DNA of 62,940 nucleotides, counting the filler, from Hyphochytrium catenoides (Eukaryota; Protista; Hyphochytriomycota), in the NCBI GenBank assembly GCA_900088475.1. It is 8 parts of 8 records of this genome, joined end to end, with 100 filler letters (N's around TTAATTAATTAA, not from the genome) between each part and the next. Parts side by side here need not be neighbours in the genome. Positions count along the whole stretch, not along the records: positions 16,588 to 41,613 come from FLMG01004043.1; 7 more parts are not named here. One strand, given 5' to 3'. Positions within the stretch are counted from its first letter, which is position 1, and each line of letters starts with the position of its first letter. Positions 17,011 through 39,657 of this stretch are shown here, piece after piece. The notes under the pieces are model-generated. The model was given only the letters and a program-made list of their open reading frames with translations. It made no database searches and was not told where the DNA came from. A program made the position numbers and the translations under genes.

Positions 17011-17470
17011 GTATGCTTCCAAGATGCTTATGTATCAATAATAACCTACAGGTCTGGGTTCACATACCTCAAGGTGCCTCAGCTCACTGGAAGATCACGA
17101 CAGGCCTTTGGACGCCGCAGTGTACTTCTTGAAGTGCTTTGAGGTGCAGGGATCGGAGTCATCCCAGAACGATTGCCGCTTATTCTTGCTCATCAATCTT
17201 AGCGCCATGGGACCGCAACCGGATTTAGAATTACATAATGATACTTGGGAATCTGAACGCATTTATTTAGGTACTGTATACATGGTTTCTTATTCCTGCT
17301 TATTCTGGTGGTGGTTATTACATAACCTTAGTTCTAGGTATTATTTTGGGATCATTATTATTGGTCCAGGTACAGTATCAGAAAAGGTTAGGATAGACGT
17401 GAAGCGTTTTAGTCATCGGTACGATGAATCCTAGGACTAACGCTTCACGTCTACAATACACAGCTTATTA

Positions 17471-17508
<38 letters not shown>

Positions 17509-18517
17509 CGCTCTCTCTCGCTCTCTCTCTCGCTCTCTCTCTCGCTCTCTGTCTCGCTCCCTCTCTCTCTCTCTCTCTCTCTCTGTTTTTCTTCTTCCTT
17601 TCTCTTGCTCCTCTCTCGTTCTTGCTTCTCTCTCTCTCTCTCTCTCTCTCCGCTCTCTCTCTCTCTCTCGCTCGCTCTCTCTCTCTCTCTCTCGCTCTCT
17701 CGCTGTGTGTGTGTGTGTGTGAAAGCGCTAGTCTTCTTCCCCAGCGTTTTTGGTCTTGACCTGTTCTCCCGCTCTTTCTCACACTTTCTTACTCGTACAG
17801 GTACACTCTCCATGTATTTCCATTTTCTATGGCAAATTGCTGGCTTGCAGTTGGGTCTCTTCAACATCTGTCAGCGGCCTTATTATTTATAGATGCATCC
17901 CGACGGTGCCACCATGATAGAGATGAAGGTCCTACCCGCAGCGTCACCAGCGCTCTCTCTCTTCTCTCTGTCCTCAGACCTCAGAGCAATTGAACCATCA
18001 GACTGGCTCTGTCGCTTGCCGTCAGCAGGGATCTGCCTAACCTCCATTGTCCGACTCCGCAGCTTAGCGGTGGTTCTGCGCTGCCTCCTATGCTGCCTAT
18101 TGTTCTTTGTTTTTTATAACTTTCTGCTCATTATTCGCGACCACCTCGGCTCATACCTCATCATCTCCTAAAACTCCTAATAACCCTTTGAAGTTATTTG
18201 ACTTGGCTCCTCCTAGGTCTATCGGCTTCATGTTGCTACGTGCCAGTACTTTTCCGGCTCACTCTCAATCTCTGGCTGGCATTTGCCATAAGTGTCCTTG
18301 CGCTCTTCTCTGCTATATACAAAGTGCATTGTCTGCATCACGGCTGCTGGAGAGGGAAGGGAAGTAAAAGTTAAAGACCCTGCCTTGATTTTCAGAGCCT
18401 CGGCGCACTGGCCCCGACTTCAGCTTCACGGTGGTTTTGTTCATTAGAGTCAGGATGACCCTTTGTGCTGCCTTCTACGGAACATAGCAGGTTGCAGGTC
18501 CGCCTAATAGAAGGAGG

Positions 18518-21110
18518 ATGGAGTCGATCAATAGTACTGCCATCAGGGGCTATGACCACGGTGGCTACGGCCACCAGGCAGACTTCACCGTCCATAACGT
18601 CATCATCCATCTCACGCAGCTCGATGTATGGAGCACACTGATCCTGGTGGGATTTGCTCTCTCGGCGGTGGCAGTGATGGCCGTCCTGATCTTCATAGTG
18701 AAGCGAAAGAGGTGGCGGCGCGTAGTGGATCGCATTATGATGATGATTTGCTTGTCAGACTTGACGTATGCCATCTTCGGCACACTGTTGATGAAGCACT
18801 GGTATCTAGTAAAGGATGGAAACTTTGCTTGGGCTACTTTTGCTCTAGCTGGCGGAGGCTTCATTGGAGCGCAGCTCTGGACTGTGGCTCTGATCGTCTA
18901 CGTGGGTCGGGCCGTCAAGATGAATAGCTACACAGCTCCCCTCACTGTACGGGGTGAGATACTCCAGTTTATAGCCATATTCCTATTATCCTTCACGGGA
19001 CCAATGATTGACGTCGCAGTCGGGCTCACGTCGACATCTTCCTGGAGCTCAATGATTGCTCTGCTTTGCCAGTTAGTTGGAGTCGCTCTGAGCCTTATGG
19101 TAACGCTGATCTGGGGTCTGTGCGTGGCTTACACGGTGAAGACTACCGCTGTCCGGACGGCAAGTAGACTCAAAAGGATCTGCGTATTAGGAGTCATCCT
19201 CTGGTCTGTCGCCACTATCGCTGCAGTGGGCGGGCTTGTAGGCATCTTAACGATGCGCACTACACCGGAGTCGTCCTGGTCAAGAAAGGAAAATTTTACC
19301 AGGCTCATCGAGGTTACCTTTATCAGTCTTCTCTTCACAGTCTCATACCATGGAGTGGTGAACGGAATGCTCTTCTTTGTCAACCGTCAGTGCATTCGGA
19401 ATGAGCTTAGTCGGCGAAAGACGCAAGATGCACTGAGGTCGCCAAATATGTCCAATCGACCCACTTCCCCGGGCAGTACACCCAGGTCTAACACCATGTA
19501 TCTTCGAAGGTTTCCGACCCTGCTAGAGGTAAGAGTATGCCCTATGAGAGATTGACAGTGGTGGTAAAAGATGGAAGAACTTACCTCGTTTGCCATGGAC
19601 CAGTACTGTGAAGTCGAGCTAGGGAAGAGCATTGGTGTTGGGGCTTTTGGCACGGTATACCAGGTGAGTTAGTTGCGACGGATGCATCACAATTGGCATG
19701 GGCTGACCTCCGCCATCTTCAGGGCAAGTGGAGAGGGATAGCGGTAGCAGTAAAGCAGTGTCATGGATTCTTAAGGGATGCCTATGGAAGTACTGAGGTT
19801 GACGAGCAAGTCCGGAAAGAGGCCAACGCCATGAATGCCTTACGTCATCCCAATATTGTTCTCTTCTTGGGGGCAGCTATTACGCAGGAAGAAGGCAATT
19901 TGGTCATTATTAGGTGTGTCTCAGTTTTCTGGATAACTACTATCACTGCGACTCATGCCGTACTTGCTCCTTCAGCGAATATTGCGCAAATGGCTCTCTT
20001 TTCGACATCCTCCATAGCAAAGATCAGCGGCGCACTCTGAGCTGGAAAGCCAAGCGAAGATTAGCACTGGGGGCTTGCCGAGGTCTTTTGTACTTGCATT
20101 CTGCACATCCTCCGCTGGTACATCGAGACCTGAAGAGCGCGAACATTTTGGTGGACGAAGGGCTAAATGGGAAGGTATTGACCCTTGTTCTGTCGGCACG
20201 ATCGTTTCTTTCTAGCGCTAACTGTAATGTGGTAGCTTACGGACTTTGGGACCCTTCGTGTGCTGAACGCGGCTACGACTGCGAGAAACAGTCAAAAGCA
20301 GCCTGGGAAGGCTGGTGGCAACCCAACTATGTCAACGGCTGTCGGTACTACACGATGGACTGCTCCGGAGATATTAAGGGGCCAGGTTGGAGCCGGTGAT
20401 AGCGCAGAATATTCAGAGTCCGTAGACATCTATAGCTTTGGAATGGTACTCTATGAACTGGCAGCGGAGGAGCTTCCCTTTGCAGAATTGGGATCAAATA
20501 TTGAGGTAACGTCCAAGTTCCCTTTTCCACCCTTTATTGGCCACTTTTGCTTACCATCACGTGGCGTGGGCATATCTAGGTTTGGGAAGCTGTGACCTCA
20601 GGCAAGAGGCCCGTGGTGCAGAAAGGAAAGTGCAATGAAGCATGGCATAGTCTCATCAAAAGCTGCTGGATGGAGGATCCCGGCTTGAGGCCCACAGCAT
20701 CTCAAGTGGTTAAGAAATTGGAAGAAATGGTCACAGAGGAGGATGAGCATAACTGGAGATTCTCGGAGATATCAATGTTCAACGTCCGACCAGATAGCTC
20801 CCAGCATACGATGGATGATGTCGAGCAGGGAACTTACTTTATATCAAACCGGAGTTCGAGCGGTTCAACGCCTCAATCTTCAGTCCGAGAGACAGCATAT
20901 TTCTCCTTTGTGGGGTCTGTCTGGAACTATCGCCGAAGTATGGCCAGCAAGAATGATGCAGGGACGATGCGCTTTTCCAAGTTCTCTTCTTCTGTCCTAA
21001 TGACCAGCACCCACAAGGAGGAAGAGCATCACGTCTACAGGTCTTCAGAGGACTTGGAGCCTACCTCAACGCTCTGGGCTCGCTGGAAGAAGCTATGGCG
21101 CCCTCACTAA
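18518..21110 (+). CDS. 7TM (cAMP-receptor-like GPCR) fused to a tyrosine-kinase-like (TKL) protein kinase, 6 exons
   Basis: Exons 18518-19528, 19571-19663, 19723-19913, 19976-20174, 20236-20506 and 20580-21110 are in phase. Exon 1 has seven hydrophobic segments (TM2 'CLSDL', TM7 'HGVVNGMLFF'). Kinase motifs: IGVGAFGTVY, VAVK, LRHPNIVLFLG, HRDLKSAN, DFG, GTTRWTAPE, DIYSFG, CW..DP..RP. Confidence 0.88.
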
Positions 21111-21410
21111 CAACCATAAAGTTGCACCCAGCTCCAGAGGCTATCGGGACTTCATCGTTCTAATTCAGCCTATTTATAAGTTAATATTTATTGATCTAGA
21201 CCGCGGCTGACAAAATGTCGACCGCCCACCTGATACCTTTGATCCTTGCTCTGCCCCCCTTCCCCCCGCTGGTCAATTATGGCGACTGCGCTGGGAATCC
21301 GTCACGGGCTAGTTCCGCTCATTGCTAAATAAAATACACCTGTCCATGCTGCCCTATCATACACCTGACACAACTAACAACCTATTAACCTAGCCTACCT
21401 CTCTCTCTCT

Positions 21411-21977
21411 TTAAGTCAAGCTAATCATTGTGCAAAGCAGTTCCTCGTCCTCTTTTCTGACAAACCGCCCCTTCACACGTAGCCTTGAATCCGCGAAGTT
21501 CTTCCTAACGTCATAATCAACCTTCTTGGCCCAAACGCGACGCTTTCTCTTTTCAAGAAACTTCTCAATCCGCTTCCGCCGGGCTTCAGGGCTGTATGCA
21601 CCAATGTATCGCCCAGAGTGGCTGGATGAGATGGTTGAAGCCTTCATTAAATCCAGACTAAGTGATCTAGAGTAACGTGAAGAGTGAGCAGTCCTGTGGG
21701 AAAAAGTTGGTCATCATCGTCTACTTACCCTTCGATGTCCATAAAGTCTGATCCATCTGATACAGTGGAAGCAACAGATAGAGCCCGAAGACGAGGATAT
21801 CTCCAGATATCGCCCACGCTTGTAGGACTGCAGTCTTGCCCANNNNNNNNNNNNNNNNNNNNNNNNNNNNNNNNNNNNNNNNNNNNNNNNNNNNNNNNNN
21901 NNNNNCTTCAAAGCTGAATGGGAGAGTGCTACAAGCGACTCTGCAACAGAGATTGACTCCAAATCAACTGCTTCCAT
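21411..21977 (-). CDS. CCT-motif protein (CONSTANS/CO-like/TOC1 motif), spliced, spans an N gap
   Basis: C-terminal 'IGAYSPEARRKRIEKFLEKRKRRVWAKKVDYDVRKNFADSRLRVKGRFV' is a CCT motif. There is a GTAAG..CAG intron at ~21728-21694, and a probable 5'UTR intron upstream of ATG 21977. Confidence 0.85.
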
Positions 21978-26057: not shown

Positions 26058-28196
26058 TTAGTTCTTCTTCTCCTCTTGGACAGTAGTTGATGGTGGTGTC
26101 TCTTCTAATGGCTCTATTGACGCGGCATTTTCCTGGCCGAGCACCTCGCCCTGCTGCTCAACTTCAAAGGTGGCAAAGTCTAGTTCTTCTTCCGCCACAG
26201 ACAGGCCTGCTTCTTTAGACCTGTCTAGGATGCTTGGTTCTCCTGACCCCACACAGCTATCTGAGCTGACCACCGCAGTGCACTCTCGGTCTTCTTCTTT
26301 AGCTTCATCTGATCTCGGAGAGACAATTTGCAGTGGTGTCAAGCTGGGTATGGCTAATCTTCCCTCCCCGTTATCCAGTGACGTGGCACTAGAAGCTGAG
26401 CGTCTCGGATTGTCCAGGTTTCCAACCAGAAATGTTCTAGCTCGATACTGAAAATGGTCGGGGGAGGGAGGGACCGAGTATGAAAAGTATATCAATTATC
26501 TTAGGTCAAGCGAATCCTTCTTTATGCGCTTACCTTTTCTTGAAACTCGTCCTCCCCTCTAGACAAAACGTAGTCCTGATAGCTGGGTTTGAAGTTATGA
26601 TACGCATCCATCACGATATCGTTAACACTCATCACCTATGGGGAGAACGTTAGTAACGTTGATAGGGGAAGCTTCACCAGTGTCGAGGCGCCAAGGTGTC
26701 CTGGACCTACCTCCTTCGCGTTTTCGAGCACGGTTGCTGACGGAATGTGCTCGAACGAGGTCTTGAAGTAAGTTGCGGAGAACGCCACCAAGTGTAGAAC
26801 AGAAAAGATGACCATCTCCAAACAAATAATGAAATCTTCCCATTTTGAGGCCTGTATCATGAAAGTGGTTTGAACATTTTAACCATGCACAAGGGAAGAG
26901 GTCAGTGCTTTTGAGGGAACTTAATACGGAGTATCCGGTTAGACTCTTCCTCAACGTCAACGCTATATCCACGTACCAGCCCGTCTCTGGCCTTCATTCC
27001 TGGGATAACGGAGACCAGTAAGGCTTGCCAATAAGTCATAAACACCACAAGCTTCACTGCGAGAAACTTGCTGACAGGAGAGAAGCCAACTAAATGCTTT
27101 TTGGTTGCTGCATAGATCAGGAAGAGACAGTACAATGCCCAGGTATAAGAGACATTGTAAACGACCAGCAGTAGCAGCTGATATGACAAGGACTCGTAAC
27201 GGTTAACAGCAAGCATTATCAGCGACACGAGCGCAAATAGAGGCTTCACGATGACCTACATGCCAAGATAGACTTAGTGATGTAAAGTAATGTAGAGACA
27301 AAAGAATAGTTATAGACCGGAGGAGGTTGAGAGTAGAACAGGCGAGGTATAAGAGGCTTAATGACCGGAAAACAATGAGTCAATTGCCGTTAAATATGAG
27401 AGACGGTTGGTACACAGAATATATGGCTTGAGGCAGCATGTCAGAAACCGCATGGCAGGCGAAAGCGGCAAGCGGACGAAGCATAGGATCTTAAGCTAGC
27501 ACAAACGCAGAAGAGATGAAAGAAGAGGTGAAGAAGTGGAGGCAGGTCCAGGAATGAGAGATGCGAAGGAAGAGAGAGACGCGGACAGAACTTCCGTAAA
27601 GCACTCACGAATTGAATGACCCCTTTCTTGCAGTTCCGCAGGAAGCGGCCATCTTTGTCCATCGGCTCTAGCCAGCAAAGGGGCCAGGGGTGGTGAAGCG
27701 GGGAGTCATGGATCATCTTATTGACGCATGAGCCCTCTCCGCCCAAGTAAGTGAGGATCAGACTGCGGATAGCCAAAAATTGGAAGAGGAAGACAGAATG
27801 AAGAATGAGCATGCCAATAAGCAATAAGGACGGACGGGCTGAACAGTAAACAACAGCTTACCCCAGGAATAAATAGACCACGAACGCTTCATAACAATCT
27901 CGTATTGTTTCGATGATGGGTCCTATGCTAGGCCAGGCCAAGGATAGCCAGGAGCACACCGCATAAAGTGGAACGACGAAAAGGATGCGGACAATGTACC
28001 GCTGAAGCCCTGGACGCGTGTAGTACTTCAGATGAGTATAGATATTGTAGAAACTAATGGCTGTTGCCGCGCAGGCGGCAATCAGTGCATAGAAGGCAGC
28101 TGAGAAGGAGTCGATCCATAGAAGATTGACCCCTGCGAACTCCGTTAGAGTGGAATTATGACGCTCGTCTCCAAAGGTCGGGATCTGCGGAGCCAT
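26058..28196 (-). CDS. TMEM184 / organic solute transporter alpha-like protein, spliced
   Basis: Motifs 'HLKYYTRPGLQRYIVRILFVVPLYAVCSWLSL', 'IRDCYEAFVVY', 'FLRNCKKGVIQF', 'SKFLAVKLVVFMTYWQ' and 'DFIICLEMVIFSVLHLVAFS'. Confidence 0.92.
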
Positions 28197-31533: not shown

Positions 31534-32883
31534 ATGCAGAGAGTGGTGCATTACATCCATAAGAGGCCCGTCAGGGCTCGGAATGGCCTTGGCGACCTTC
31601 AACACGGATATCCTACCAGAGGTGACAAAGTCGGTTGTGTCCGAAAAAGGCGGCATCCTACGGCAAGCGCAAGGAATTTCGGACATGTGAAGTTCAATAG
31701 AAGCGGGTGCAACGCCTTCAGATCACATGCGGCTCCGCACGGCCCCTTGGCCCTTTCAGCTGGTCATGTCTGCTATAACAGCAACCGAAGACGCTGGGTA
31801 CTGGCAACACTCTCCCTCATGGTTGCATCGACAGGCATAGGCGTCCTAGTACCCCAGGACGACGATGCAGTAGCAGTTTGCTTCTCCGAGGTAGCTGCCC
31901 GGCAAGAAAACGAGCATGATTCTTCGTCCAATGGTGCGCTTAGGGACACTCGACCACTATCGGCAGAACCTGGGCAGACTCAGCCTCAAGGAAGCAACTC
32001 TTGGACTATCAGTTCTAAGCCGCCTCTTGGGGTTGGCGCGTACGGCGAAGTCCGTGAGGGGACCTTATCGCATAATGGAGAACGTGTTGCCATTAAACAG
32101 TCGGAGTTGCACACAGGACAGGCTAAGCACTCAGCAAGGAGAGAGATAGACGCCTTGGGGCTTCTCAAGTCGTATGGGGGCTGTCCACAAATCATAGAGC
32201 TGAAGGACTATCACGAGAATGAGTCCACCGCCTACTTAGTGACAGAGCTTGTGGAGGGATATGACCTGTTAACTTATCTAGAGACGGAGGGAGATTTAAG
32301 TGAGAGAACGGCTGCGCACATTGTCATGGAGGTGGCTCTGGCTTTGGAGTTCATGCACGCACATGGAGTCATACATATGGATATCAAACCCGAGAACATT
32401 ATGCTTAGCAAGCCATCCTCATCGTCGCTCGATGTACTTCCCCATGTCAAGGTTGTCGACTTTGGAAGTGCTCTTCTCTTACAACCGGAGAGCACCGCGA
32501 GTAATGCCGATAGCGATGATAACCCCACCGTACGCCCTCGCGGAACTCTGTCTTATCTACCACCAGAAGCTTTTATAGAAAAAAATTATAGTGCTGCGAT
32601 GGACATCTGGGCGTTAGGTCTAATAATGTGGATGATGTTGGTCATGAGCCATCCCTTTGACAATGCAGAGGAGCTGAGTGAAGAAGAGCTGATAGGAAGG
32701 ATATGTAACGGCCCATTGACAATGAAAGGTAGACGATGGCGGAGAGTTTCGGCAGATGCCAAGGACCTCCTTAGGAAAATGTTAGAACAAGACCCTCAAA
32801 GTAGAGCATCGATAGAGGATGTCCTCACGCATCCTTGGATTCTCCGAAACATAGGGCCAGGAATGCATCCAGCGAAAGGATAG
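31534..32883 (+). CDS. CAMK-group-like Ser/Thr protein kinase, intronless
   Basis: LGVGAYGEV, VAIK, HMDIKPEN, DFG, GTLSYLPPE, DIWALG, and 'W..VSADAKDLLRKMLEQDP..R....VL.HPW'. The N-terminus is basic and followed by a hydrophobic segment. Confidence 0.93.
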   Translation: MQRVVHYIHKRPVRARNGLGDLQHGYPTRGDKVGCVRKRRHPTASARNFGHVKFNRSGCNAFRSHAAPHGPLALSAGHVCYNSNRRRWVLATLSLMVASTGIGVLVPQDDDAVAVCFSEVAARQENEHDSSSNGALRDTRPLSAEPGQTQPQGSNSWTISSKPPLGVGAYGEVREGTLSHNGERVAIKQSELHTGQAKHSARREIDALGLLKSYGGCPQIIELKDYHENESTAYLVTELVEGYDLLTYLETEGDLSERTAAHIVMEVALALEFMHAHGVIHMDIKPENIMLSKPSSSSLDVLPHVKVVDFGSALLLQPESTASNADSDDNPTVRPRGTLSYLPPEAFIEKNYSAAMDIWALGLIMWMMLVMSHPFDNAEELSEEELIGRICNGPLTMKGRRWRRVSADAKDLLRKMLEQDPQSRASIEDVLTHPWILRNIGPGMHPAKG

Positions 32884-33050: not shown

Positions 33051-33878
33051 CTACTTTGATCGTTCCGAAGCGACGTCCTTGTTGTCTTTACGTTCGCTGA
33101 ACCGGCTAGTGTTATTATTGCGCCCTGTCTGTCGGCCGGTGATGTTTGAGGCTGCGCCATCATTTCGCGAGGAATCCGCGCCAAGGCGCCCAGATTGTCG
33201 TTGTGTACCGGCTTGACTGGCTCCCATCAAACTGGTTCCACCTTCACCATGACGAGAATGGTTCTCTGCAAACTTCTCTGCTTCTGCCAAGTTAATGCCA
33301 TCTGCAAATGACATCTGTGTGCTCTCCGTTGGCACAATGCGACCTACAACGGCATGGGGAACCATTCTTCTAAGAGCATAAGAAAAGAGATTTGTCCACT
33401 CCTGCATCACTTGGTATGTGGCGTTTGTTCCCAAGGAGTGGGATATGGTAGTGAGAGCAGTCTCAGCGTAGACGCTGTACATCCATGGTCTGACGCCTGG
33501 CTTAAGATTATGTGTCTCTCCTAAGCCTCGTAGTCGCATGTCCACTACGGTCAGATTTGATGTGTCAACTGATGTCAGAAAGTCCAAAGCCATGATAAGA
33601 ACATTTCCTTTCTTTGCCATGTCGTCCCCAAAAACGCTCTTAAAAGCATCAGTTCGCTCGTCTAGCCGCTCATAGAAATCGAAGTAAAACGCTATGGCTC
33701 CAGATGTGCCGTTTCGGTCAGTTTTGAGGATGTGTTCCCAGCTCTCTCTGCAGACTCCGACCGTCTCCTCGGTGACAATGGGGTCCATTGGGAATGTTGG
33801 GGGCATATAGTGCTCAACAATCTCATCGTATGTGAGCCCTTCATCCAGGATAATTTGTTGCATTCCATTGGTGGCCAT
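33051..33878 (-). CDS. Single-domain globin (3/3 fold) with low-complexity C-terminal tail, intronless
   Basis: A-helix 'CRESWEHI', B-helix 'FYFDFYERL', CD-region 'FKSVF', F-helix 'LRGLGETHN' (proximal His), 'GVRPWMY', H-helix 'VMQEWTNLFSY'. Confidence 0.8.
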   Translation of the reverse strand: MATNGMQQIILDEGLTYDEIVEHYMPPTFPMDPIVTEETVGVCRESWEHILKTDRNGTSGAIAFYFDFYERLDERTDAFKSVFGDDMAKKGNVLIMALDFLTSVDTSNLTVVDMRLRGLGETHNLKPGVRPWMYSVYAETALTTISHSLGTNATYQVMQEWTNLFSYALRRMVPHAVVGRIVPTESTQMSFADGINLAEAEKFAENHSRHGEGGTSLMGASQAGTQRQSGRLGADSSRNDGAASNITGRQTGRNNNTSRFSERKDNKDVASERSK

Positions 33879-38772: not shown

Positions 38773-39657
38773 ATGCTCTCCTTCCTTGCCTATTTGAACA
38801 AGTATAGGCTGCCCAACCCACCCAGTTCCTCTTCACAACCCAGAGTTCACTGCCGTGGAAACACGTCCTATCCAGCTTCTGAAGGCGGTGGCAGCACACT
38901 AGAGCGTATGCCAACTGACCACGAAGTCTCCGTTCTTAGGCGGGTCCAAACTGAGCTACTTACCCCATACTCTGACGACGTACATCTAGACCTTCTAAAC
39001 GCTCTCTGGGCCAGCGCCTACTCCGATCGACCGTTCAAACGGGTAGGCGTCGAGTGGAAGGCGCTGGGCTTCCAACGAGAGGATCCCGCATCAGACATCC
39101 GTGGGGGTGGAATCCGTGCGCTGAAGAACCTGATATATTACCTGGAGCATCATGGGCCCTCAGCTAGAGCTATTCTTGAACGTCGTCGGAATAGAGCTCA
39201 GGGGTCTGCAGAGAACTATCCCTGGGCGACTGCTGGCATCATCATCAGCCGGACGGTGGCAGAGCAACTGATGATTGTCTCCGTCGCGGGGAGCAAGAGC
39301 TCAGACTTCCAGTCTTCCTTGCAGCCTTTTTGGCACATATGCGGCAGTGATCACTTTTTGTACGAGCTTTTCTGCTACACGTTTGAACTGTTGGATAAAC
39401 TTTGGAATGAGGCCAATGCGACCTACATGGACTTCCCTAAGGTCCTACGGTCAACCAGAGACCGTCTTGCAGAGCTTATGAAACAGCCTCGGTTTTTAGA
39501 AGATCACCTACGCCACTTTGCTTCATCATCTAATCATAGCACTTCTGACGACGAGCGCGACCTGGATGAGGGCAAGTCGGCAGAAGATCCGCCGTCACTA
39601 AGTCCGAGCAAGGTACCAGAAGACAACAGAGCATATTCTGCCACTTCAACTTGGTGA
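38773..39657 (+). CDS. ELMO/CED-12 domain protein (ELMOD-like Arf/Arl GAP), intronless
   Basis: 'WKALGFQREDPASDIRGGG..ALKNLIYY', 'YPWATAGI', 'YELFCY.F..LDKLW....ATYMDFPKVL'. Confidence 0.92.
   Translation: MLSFLAYLNKYRLPNPPSSSSQPRVHCRGNTSYPASEGGGSTLERMPTDHEVSVLRRVQTELLTPYSDDVHLDLLNALWASAYSDRPFKRVGVEWKALGFQREDPASDIRGGGIRALKNLIYYLEHHGPSARAILERRRNRAQGSAENYPWATAGIIISRTVAEQLMIVSVAGSKSSDFQSSLQPFWHICGSDHFLYELFCYTFELLDKLWNEANATYMDFPKVLRSTRDRLAELMKQPRFLEDHLRHFASSSNHSTSDDERDLDEGKSAEDPPSLSPSKVPEDNRAYSATSTW

Follow-up and report, generated by a model that had tools for sequence, protein, structure and literature searches.

Proteins that join a seven-transmembrane (7TM) domain of the sort found in G protein-coupled receptors (GPCRs) to a kinase of the tyrosine kinase-like (TKL) group, referred to as GPCR-TKL, were first reported solely from oomycetes and amoebozoans, with two Dictyostelium proteins noted, and constitute the largest bigram class in Phytophthora infestans, where about half of the 17 genes also encode a DEP domain; none of the oomycete members has been functionally characterised (PMC5784254, PMC6033456). 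GPCR-type transmembrane kinases with TKL-related kinase domains have been described in ciliates and amoebae (PMC10463195). Acanthoecid choanoflagellates possess a large GPCR-TKL/K family with 7TM domains that group with none of the other GPCRs, and GPCR-TKs are found in sponges and choanoflagellates, the authors of that work concluding that the fusion arose repeatedly (PMC12716839). Here we describe a gene of this layout in Hyphochytrium catenoides (GenBank assembly GCA_900088475.1), located at positions 18518-21110 of a 62,940-nucleotide stretch of DNA (the window) made of eight parts of the genome joined with filler, in the part that derives from FLMG01004043.1 (positions 16,588 to 41,613). 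The gene very probably encodes a 7TM-TKL receptor kinase.

The original prediction regarded GPCR-kinase fusions as mainly an oomycete feature, a view that is out of date given their occurrence in amoebozoans, ciliates, acanthoecid choanoflagellates and sponges (PMC5784254, PMC10463195, PMC12716839). The layout is thus already known in several protist groups, and the H. catenoides gene is probably another example, independently assembled. Its product would work as a GPCR-TKL does and, like the oomycete proteins, would combine in one polypeptide an N-terminal seven-helix domain with a TKL-type kinase at the C-terminus whose predicted location is the cytoplasm. Unlike them, it has five introns in its gene, lacks the DEP domain found in about half of the oomycete genes, and has a 7TM domain with no detectable similarity in a library expected to cover oomycete proteomes; 7TM homology thus gives no sign of descent from the oomycete family, with very remote homology being possible. 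The amoebozoan and ciliate GPCR-type kinases (PMC10463195) share with it a 7TM domain, a C-terminal TKL-related kinase and the absence of DEP, a likeness of architecture between proteins whose 7TM domains have no demonstrable sequence link. Likewise by architecture, it resembles the acanthoecid GPCR-TKL/K proteins and the sponge and choanoflagellate GPCR-TKs (PMC12716839), whose pattern its orphan 7TM domain fits, whereas the lineage is a different one and the locus is also found in soil metagenomes.

The gene reveals no new kind of system. 7TM-kinase fusions are plentiful in several protist groups and none is functionally characterised; the question they pose is whether a kinase covalently attached to a seven-helix receptor can be driven by it with no G protein involved. 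One more example strengthens the view that such fusions originated repeatedly (PMC12716839), and this gene, with its orphan receptor domain, compact tether and intact kinase, offers a construct for tests of mechanism.

Gene model, kinase half and selective constraint

An open reading frame (ORF) listing over 18200-21500 returned a 345-residue ORF running from ATG 18518 to a TGA ending at 19555, followed on its 3' side by kinase-like ORF pieces whose frame shifts from one piece to the next. Joining six exons of the plus strand and translating them gave a 2,295-nt coding sequence and a 764-residue protein without internal stops. In this protein an N-terminus of 37 residues precedes seven hydrophobic helices, which a basic tether rich in Ser and Pro connects to a complete kinase domain, and the C-terminus is a Ser-rich tail. 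All five introns have GT at the 5' end and AG at the 3' end, and the exons join in frame [Table 1]. Hydropathy and predicted secondary structure bear out the earlier description of a first exon of about 1 kb encoding seven hydrophobic helices, and the splicing model, the Pfam matches and the kinase motifs bear out that of a Ser/Pro/Arg linker followed by five more exons encoding an intact TKL kinase and a Ser-rich tail. The intron-free 7TM beside an intron-rich kinase had been taken to suggest the fusion of two separately derived modules; intron density, however, differs from one kinase to another in this piece, a neighbouring kinase ORF of 449 residues being free of introns.

The Pfam matches to PK_Tyr_Ser-Thr/Pkinase on exons 3 to 6 are co-linear and non-overlapping (profile positions 28-78, 81-138, 139/164-205 and 216-258), which supports the exon borders. 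All kinase motifs are present: GxGxxG at residues 359-364, VAVK with K379, HRDLKSAN at 481-488, DFG at 501-503, APE at 541-543, and CW..DP..RP. As many as 37 residues separate DFG from APE, making for a long activation segment, and the best PDB relatives of exon 4 all belong to the TKL group (BRI1, BAK1, CTR1, SymRK, RIPK2, IRAK4 and TNNI3K). By these motifs and relatives, the kinase is an intact TKL-type, Ser/Thr(/Tyr) enzyme predicted to be catalytically competent. The Ser-rich tail of about 125 residues contains no recognised domain, the Pfam scan of exon 6 returning just the last part of the kinase domain together with a FEZ match below threshold, and the same scan revealed no DEP domain 3' of the kinase.

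The locus was found in three genomic DNA runs; a search for RNA runs returned none. Contigs from these independent runs cover most of the stretch with no indels and no joints, and disclose two haplotypes over parts of the gene. Forty allelic or strain differences in the contigs were mapped onto the model, 27 of them synonymous, five non-synonymous and eight outside the coding sequence; exon 1 has a ratio of synonymous to non-synonymous changes of 16:3, and the kinase with its tail one of 11:2. Both halves are under strong purifying selection in exactly the modelled frames, and the gene is real and constrained. The absence of the gene from every protein collection searched would suit a decaying, mis-assembled, pseudogenic or chimeric locus giving no functional protein, but we consider this highly improbable in view of a spliced coding sequence free of frame breaks, intact kinase motifs and the agreement of contigs from three DNA runs; the 27:5 ratio led us to reject a pseudogene or a chance ORF.

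Sequence words of this locus also occur, in a smaller proportion, in two soil metagenomes. One of them, a 2025 run (X4), yielded contigs 96-99% identical at 19253-19401 and 19958-20199 (exons 1 and 4) that diverge in intron 4 after 20199, indicating that a close relative or strain of the organism lives in soil.

Topology and affinities of the seven-helix half

Hydropathy delimits seven hydrophobic segments in exon 1, at approximately residues 38-60, 73-93, 105-130, 146-170, 177-205, 220-245 and 263-288. The secondary structure of a single-sequence AlphaFold model likewise consists of seven long helices, the last of which continues to about residue 307; its end is read as a predicted helix 8, short and amphipathic. 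The predicted cytoplasmic loops and tail contain 24 lysines and arginines versus six on the outer side, where both glycosylation sequons (N-x-S/T) close to the bundle, N5 and N259, are also located. This charge bias and the outward position of the sequons are clear signals of an N-out/C-in topology, with the kinase predicted to lie in the cytoplasm. The basic, Ser/Pro/Thr-rich tether occupies residues 289-348, leaving about 40 residues with several Ser-Pro and Thr-Pro pairs between helix 8 and the kinase N-lobe. Helix 7 (residues 263-288, LIEVTFISLLFTVSYHGVVNGMLFFV) is devoid of lysine, on which ground a microbial (type I) or other retinal-binding rhodopsin was rejected.

How close this bundle stands to known receptors is less straightforward. 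The motifs described at the outset as cAMP-receptor-like are present, LSDL at residues 79-82 in helix 2 and HGVVNG at residues 278-283 in helix 7, but the label itself was not confirmed; of the checks proposed for exon 1, helix prediction upheld the seven transmembrane segments and the search against the Dicty_CAR, Git3 and 7tm families returned no match. Sequence and profile methods do not recognise the domain as a GPCR. A Pfam scan of exon 1 at E<=1 gave no match, Dicty_CAR, Git3 and the 7tm families all being absent; nor were there matches in NCBIfam or among PDB sequences at E<=10, among 1.84 billion representative proteins by phmmer (none at E<=0.001), or in a word-seeded search of 5.8 billion clusters (none at E<=10). 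AlphaFold models built without an alignment reached a predicted local distance difference test (pLDDT) score of 50.6 for the whole exon and 52.7 for its core (residues 28-305), and these models, too poor for a fold search to speak for or against a GPCR, retrieved generic helical matches, none of them significant, when submitted to Foldseek (PDB, AFDB Swiss-Prot and ESM Atlas) and VIA-align. What speaks for a GPCR is an ESM-Atlas feature search in which every one of the nearest named clusters is a GPCR-clan family (Dicty_CAR, 7tm_2, Git3, Ocular_alb and 7tm_1; scores 0.94-0.96), with 174-191 of 256 features shared and the same outcome for the whole exon and the core. The top scores of 0.95-0.96 correspond to a level reached by about one in 100 shuffled proteins; feature similarity of this kind, which carries no alignment or E-value, serves as a lead only. 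In JGI metagenome and metatranscriptome contigs, exon 1 was found neither by protein search nor by the exact 24-mer at its end.

On language-model features alone, we regard the 7TM domain with moderate confidence as GPCR-like, leaning to the cAMP-receptor/class-B side. With Dicty_CAR (PF05462), Git3 (PF11710) and 7tm_2 (PF00002) it shares, besides these features, a size of about 300 residues, short loops and a short N-terminus; it differs from them in yielding no profile match at E<=1 and in its kinase, those receptors having none and using heterotrimeric G proteins. The domain is not filed in Dicty_CAR, to which it is linked by language-model neighbourhood and by no profile match. The failure to match GPCR profiles, PDB sequences and database proteins would also suit a real fusion in which the seven-helix part is a membrane anchor, or a member of some other seven-helix family, and does no more than hold at the membrane a TKL kinase that is constitutive or regulated in another way; exon 1 also offers no cysteine pair for the usual disulfide that links helix 3 to the second outer loop. 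We nevertheless find this reading doubtful, given that the language-model neighbours are uniformly of the GPCR clan and include no transporters, PAQR proteins or rhodopsins (the last also disfavoured by the lysine-free helix 7), that the N-out/C-in orientation, short loops and helix-8-like segment follow the GPCR pattern, and that the bundle itself is under strong purifying selection.

Whether the bundle and the kinase are made as one polypeptide depends on intron 1, whose 42 nt are a multiple of three and contain two in-frame stops (TGA 19553-19555 and TAA 19565-19567). That this intron, opening with GTAAG and ending with AAG, is phase-compatible was correctly foreseen, the frame being kept upon its removal. 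The A of its branch-like TTGAC lies at -15 from the 3' end, similar to CTGAC at -16 in intron 2 and CTAAC at -14 in intron 4. A signature of donor, branch and acceptor occurs about 4.8 times per 25 kb of block-shuffled sequence, and the chance expectation for an in-frame one within the 25-nt donor stretch needed to remove both stops is about 0.0016. A second in-frame route, from the same donor at 19529 to an acceptor at 19603 (a 75-nt intron with CTTAC at -20), would still fuse the halves, with a difference of 11 residues. No contig spans 19529-19570 whole; the donor junction 19528/19529 is crossed in two of the genomic DNA runs (X2 and X3) and the acceptor junction 19570/19571 in the third (X1), and the contigs show no joints, as DNA would give. 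Against the fusion stand the length of the intron, which is shorter than all others defined here (59-74 nt in the same gene, 99 nt in the OSTalpha-like neighbour), its purine-rich acceptor without a pyrimidine tract, and an ATG at the very start of exon 2 whose context favours initiation (G at +4, A at -3); its removal, moreover, is predicted from splice signals. These same points would favour two products, the 42 nt being usually retained, the receptor ending as a 345-residue protein at TGA 19555 and the kinase being produced on its own from ATG 19571, which coincides with the proposed acceptor, through an internal promoter or as a downstream cistron, with the fused protein at most a minor splice form. 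We think this unlikely. The interval from stop 19555 to ATG 19571 would be 15 nt on the same strand, out of line with the kilobases that space other genes in this piece; no AATAAA is found from 19555 to 21110; the complete donor, branch and acceptor signature in the 42 nt is rare by chance; and translation of a second cistron is improbable because of the long upstream ORF with its many AUGs. A kinase starting at 19571 would also have just about eight residues ahead of its domain, and so short an N-terminus is unusual among TKL kinases. The genuine-looking splice signals, the 15-nt gap and the lack of an intervening AATAAA favour fusion, and we therefore consider it likely, on these sequence features, that the 7TM half and the kinase are joined in one protein.

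Proposed signalling by the probable fused receptor kinase

The wider proposal, that the gene specifies a single 764-residue polytopic membrane protein in which a GPCR-like sensor is fused to an active kinase, appears to us probable on balance when judged from sequence. We infer both the GPCR ancestry of the bundle and all of the signalling steps that follow. The helical bundle would sense a ligand or a membrane stimulus, which may shift helices 5-7 at their cytoplasmic ends, together with helix 8, and with them the position or pairing of the tethered kinase, activation occurring either through release of the kinase or through pairing of two receptors. The kinase might then undergo autophosphorylation in the long activation loop and in either the tether or the Ser-rich tail, with phosphosites in the tail serving as docking sites, and go on to phosphorylate substrates with no need for a separate G-protein step. 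Alternatively, it may act as a G protein-coupled receptor kinase does and phosphorylate its own receptor or those nearby, an idea raised for the oomycete proteins (PMC6033456).

A more speculative and rather improbable extension is that intron 1 acts as a switch, splicing yielding the receptor-kinase and retention the 345-residue receptor, in an independently assembled fusion with an orphan seven-helix family and in a lineage outside the four known groups. If this were true, one gene would provide both a G-protein-type receptor and a self-signalling receptor.

Feature coordinates and neighbouring genes

Table 1. Coordinates of the receptor-kinase gene in the window.
Feature	Position	Strand	Description
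Start codon of exon 1	ATG 18518	+	Context AGGATGG
Exon 1	18518..19528	+	337 codons, residues 1-337: N-terminus, seven transmembrane helices, predicted helix 8, Ser/Pro/Arg-rich tether
Intron 1	19529..19570	+	42 nt, phase 0; donor GTAAGA, TTGAC, acceptor AG; predicted splicing
Exon 2	19571..19663	+	31 codons: end of tether and kinase glycine loop GVGAFG
Intron 2	19664..19722	+	59 nt; donor GTGAGT, CTGAC at -16, acceptor CAG
Exon 3	19723..19913	+	VAVK lysine K379 and alpha-C glutamate region; PK_Tyr_Ser-Thr profile 28-78
Intron 3	19914..19975	+	62 nt, phase 2; donor GTGTGT, acceptor CAG
Exon 4	19976..20174	+	Hinge and catalytic loop HRDLKSAN
Intron 4	20175..20235	+	61 nt; donor GTATTG, CTAAC at -14, acceptor TAG
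Exon 5	20236..20505	+	DFG, long activation loop (37 residues), APE, subdomain IX
Intron 5	20506..20579	+	74 nt; donor GTAACG, CTTAC at -26, acceptor TAG
Exon 6	20580..21110	+	End of kinase C-lobe (CWMEDPGLRP), Ser-rich tail; stop TAA 21108-21110
AATAAA hexamer	21328..21333	+	218 nt 3' of the stop; the sole one near the gene

The AATAAA hexamer may serve the complete six-exon transcript as its poly(A) signal. On the other side of the gene, a long CT/GA-rich microsatellite (17424-17867) with overlapping SLSLSL/RERERE ORFs on both strands, which lies some 650-1,100 nt ahead of the start codon, may represent promoter-proximal low-complexity DNA. Tail-to-tail with the receptor-kinase gene lies a 78-residue ORF on the minus strand (21411-21647) in which a CCT motif is clear (Pfam PF06203, E=9e-17); it probably forms the final exon of a longer gene extending into an assembly gap (N run at about 21840-21905).

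Further along the same piece, a multi-exon OSTalpha/TMEM184-like gene occupies 26900-28196 on the minus strand, with Pfam Solute_trans_a matches on three ORF pieces (profile positions 3-79, 73-133 and 135-225), a first intron of 99 nt with a GTAAG donor and a second of about 300 nt. A 294-residue ORF at 38773-39657 on the plus strand contains an ELMO/CED-12 domain (E=1.5e-37) and found two matches only, at 36-37% identity, among 5.8 billion clusters at E<=1e-10, suggestive of a poorly sampled lineage with no close relative in protein collections. The 275-residue ORF at 33051-33878 on the minus strand has no Pfam match, and its N-terminal part resembles, by eye, a globin-like sensor. Finally, an intron-free ORF of 449 residues at 31534-32883 on the plus strand encodes a complete Pkinase domain (E=4e-59) with a hydrophobic stretch (WVLATLSLMVASTGIGVLV) ahead of it; the product may be a single-pass membrane kinase, of a type that differs from TKL, and the ORF's lack of introns indicates that intron density varies among kinases here.

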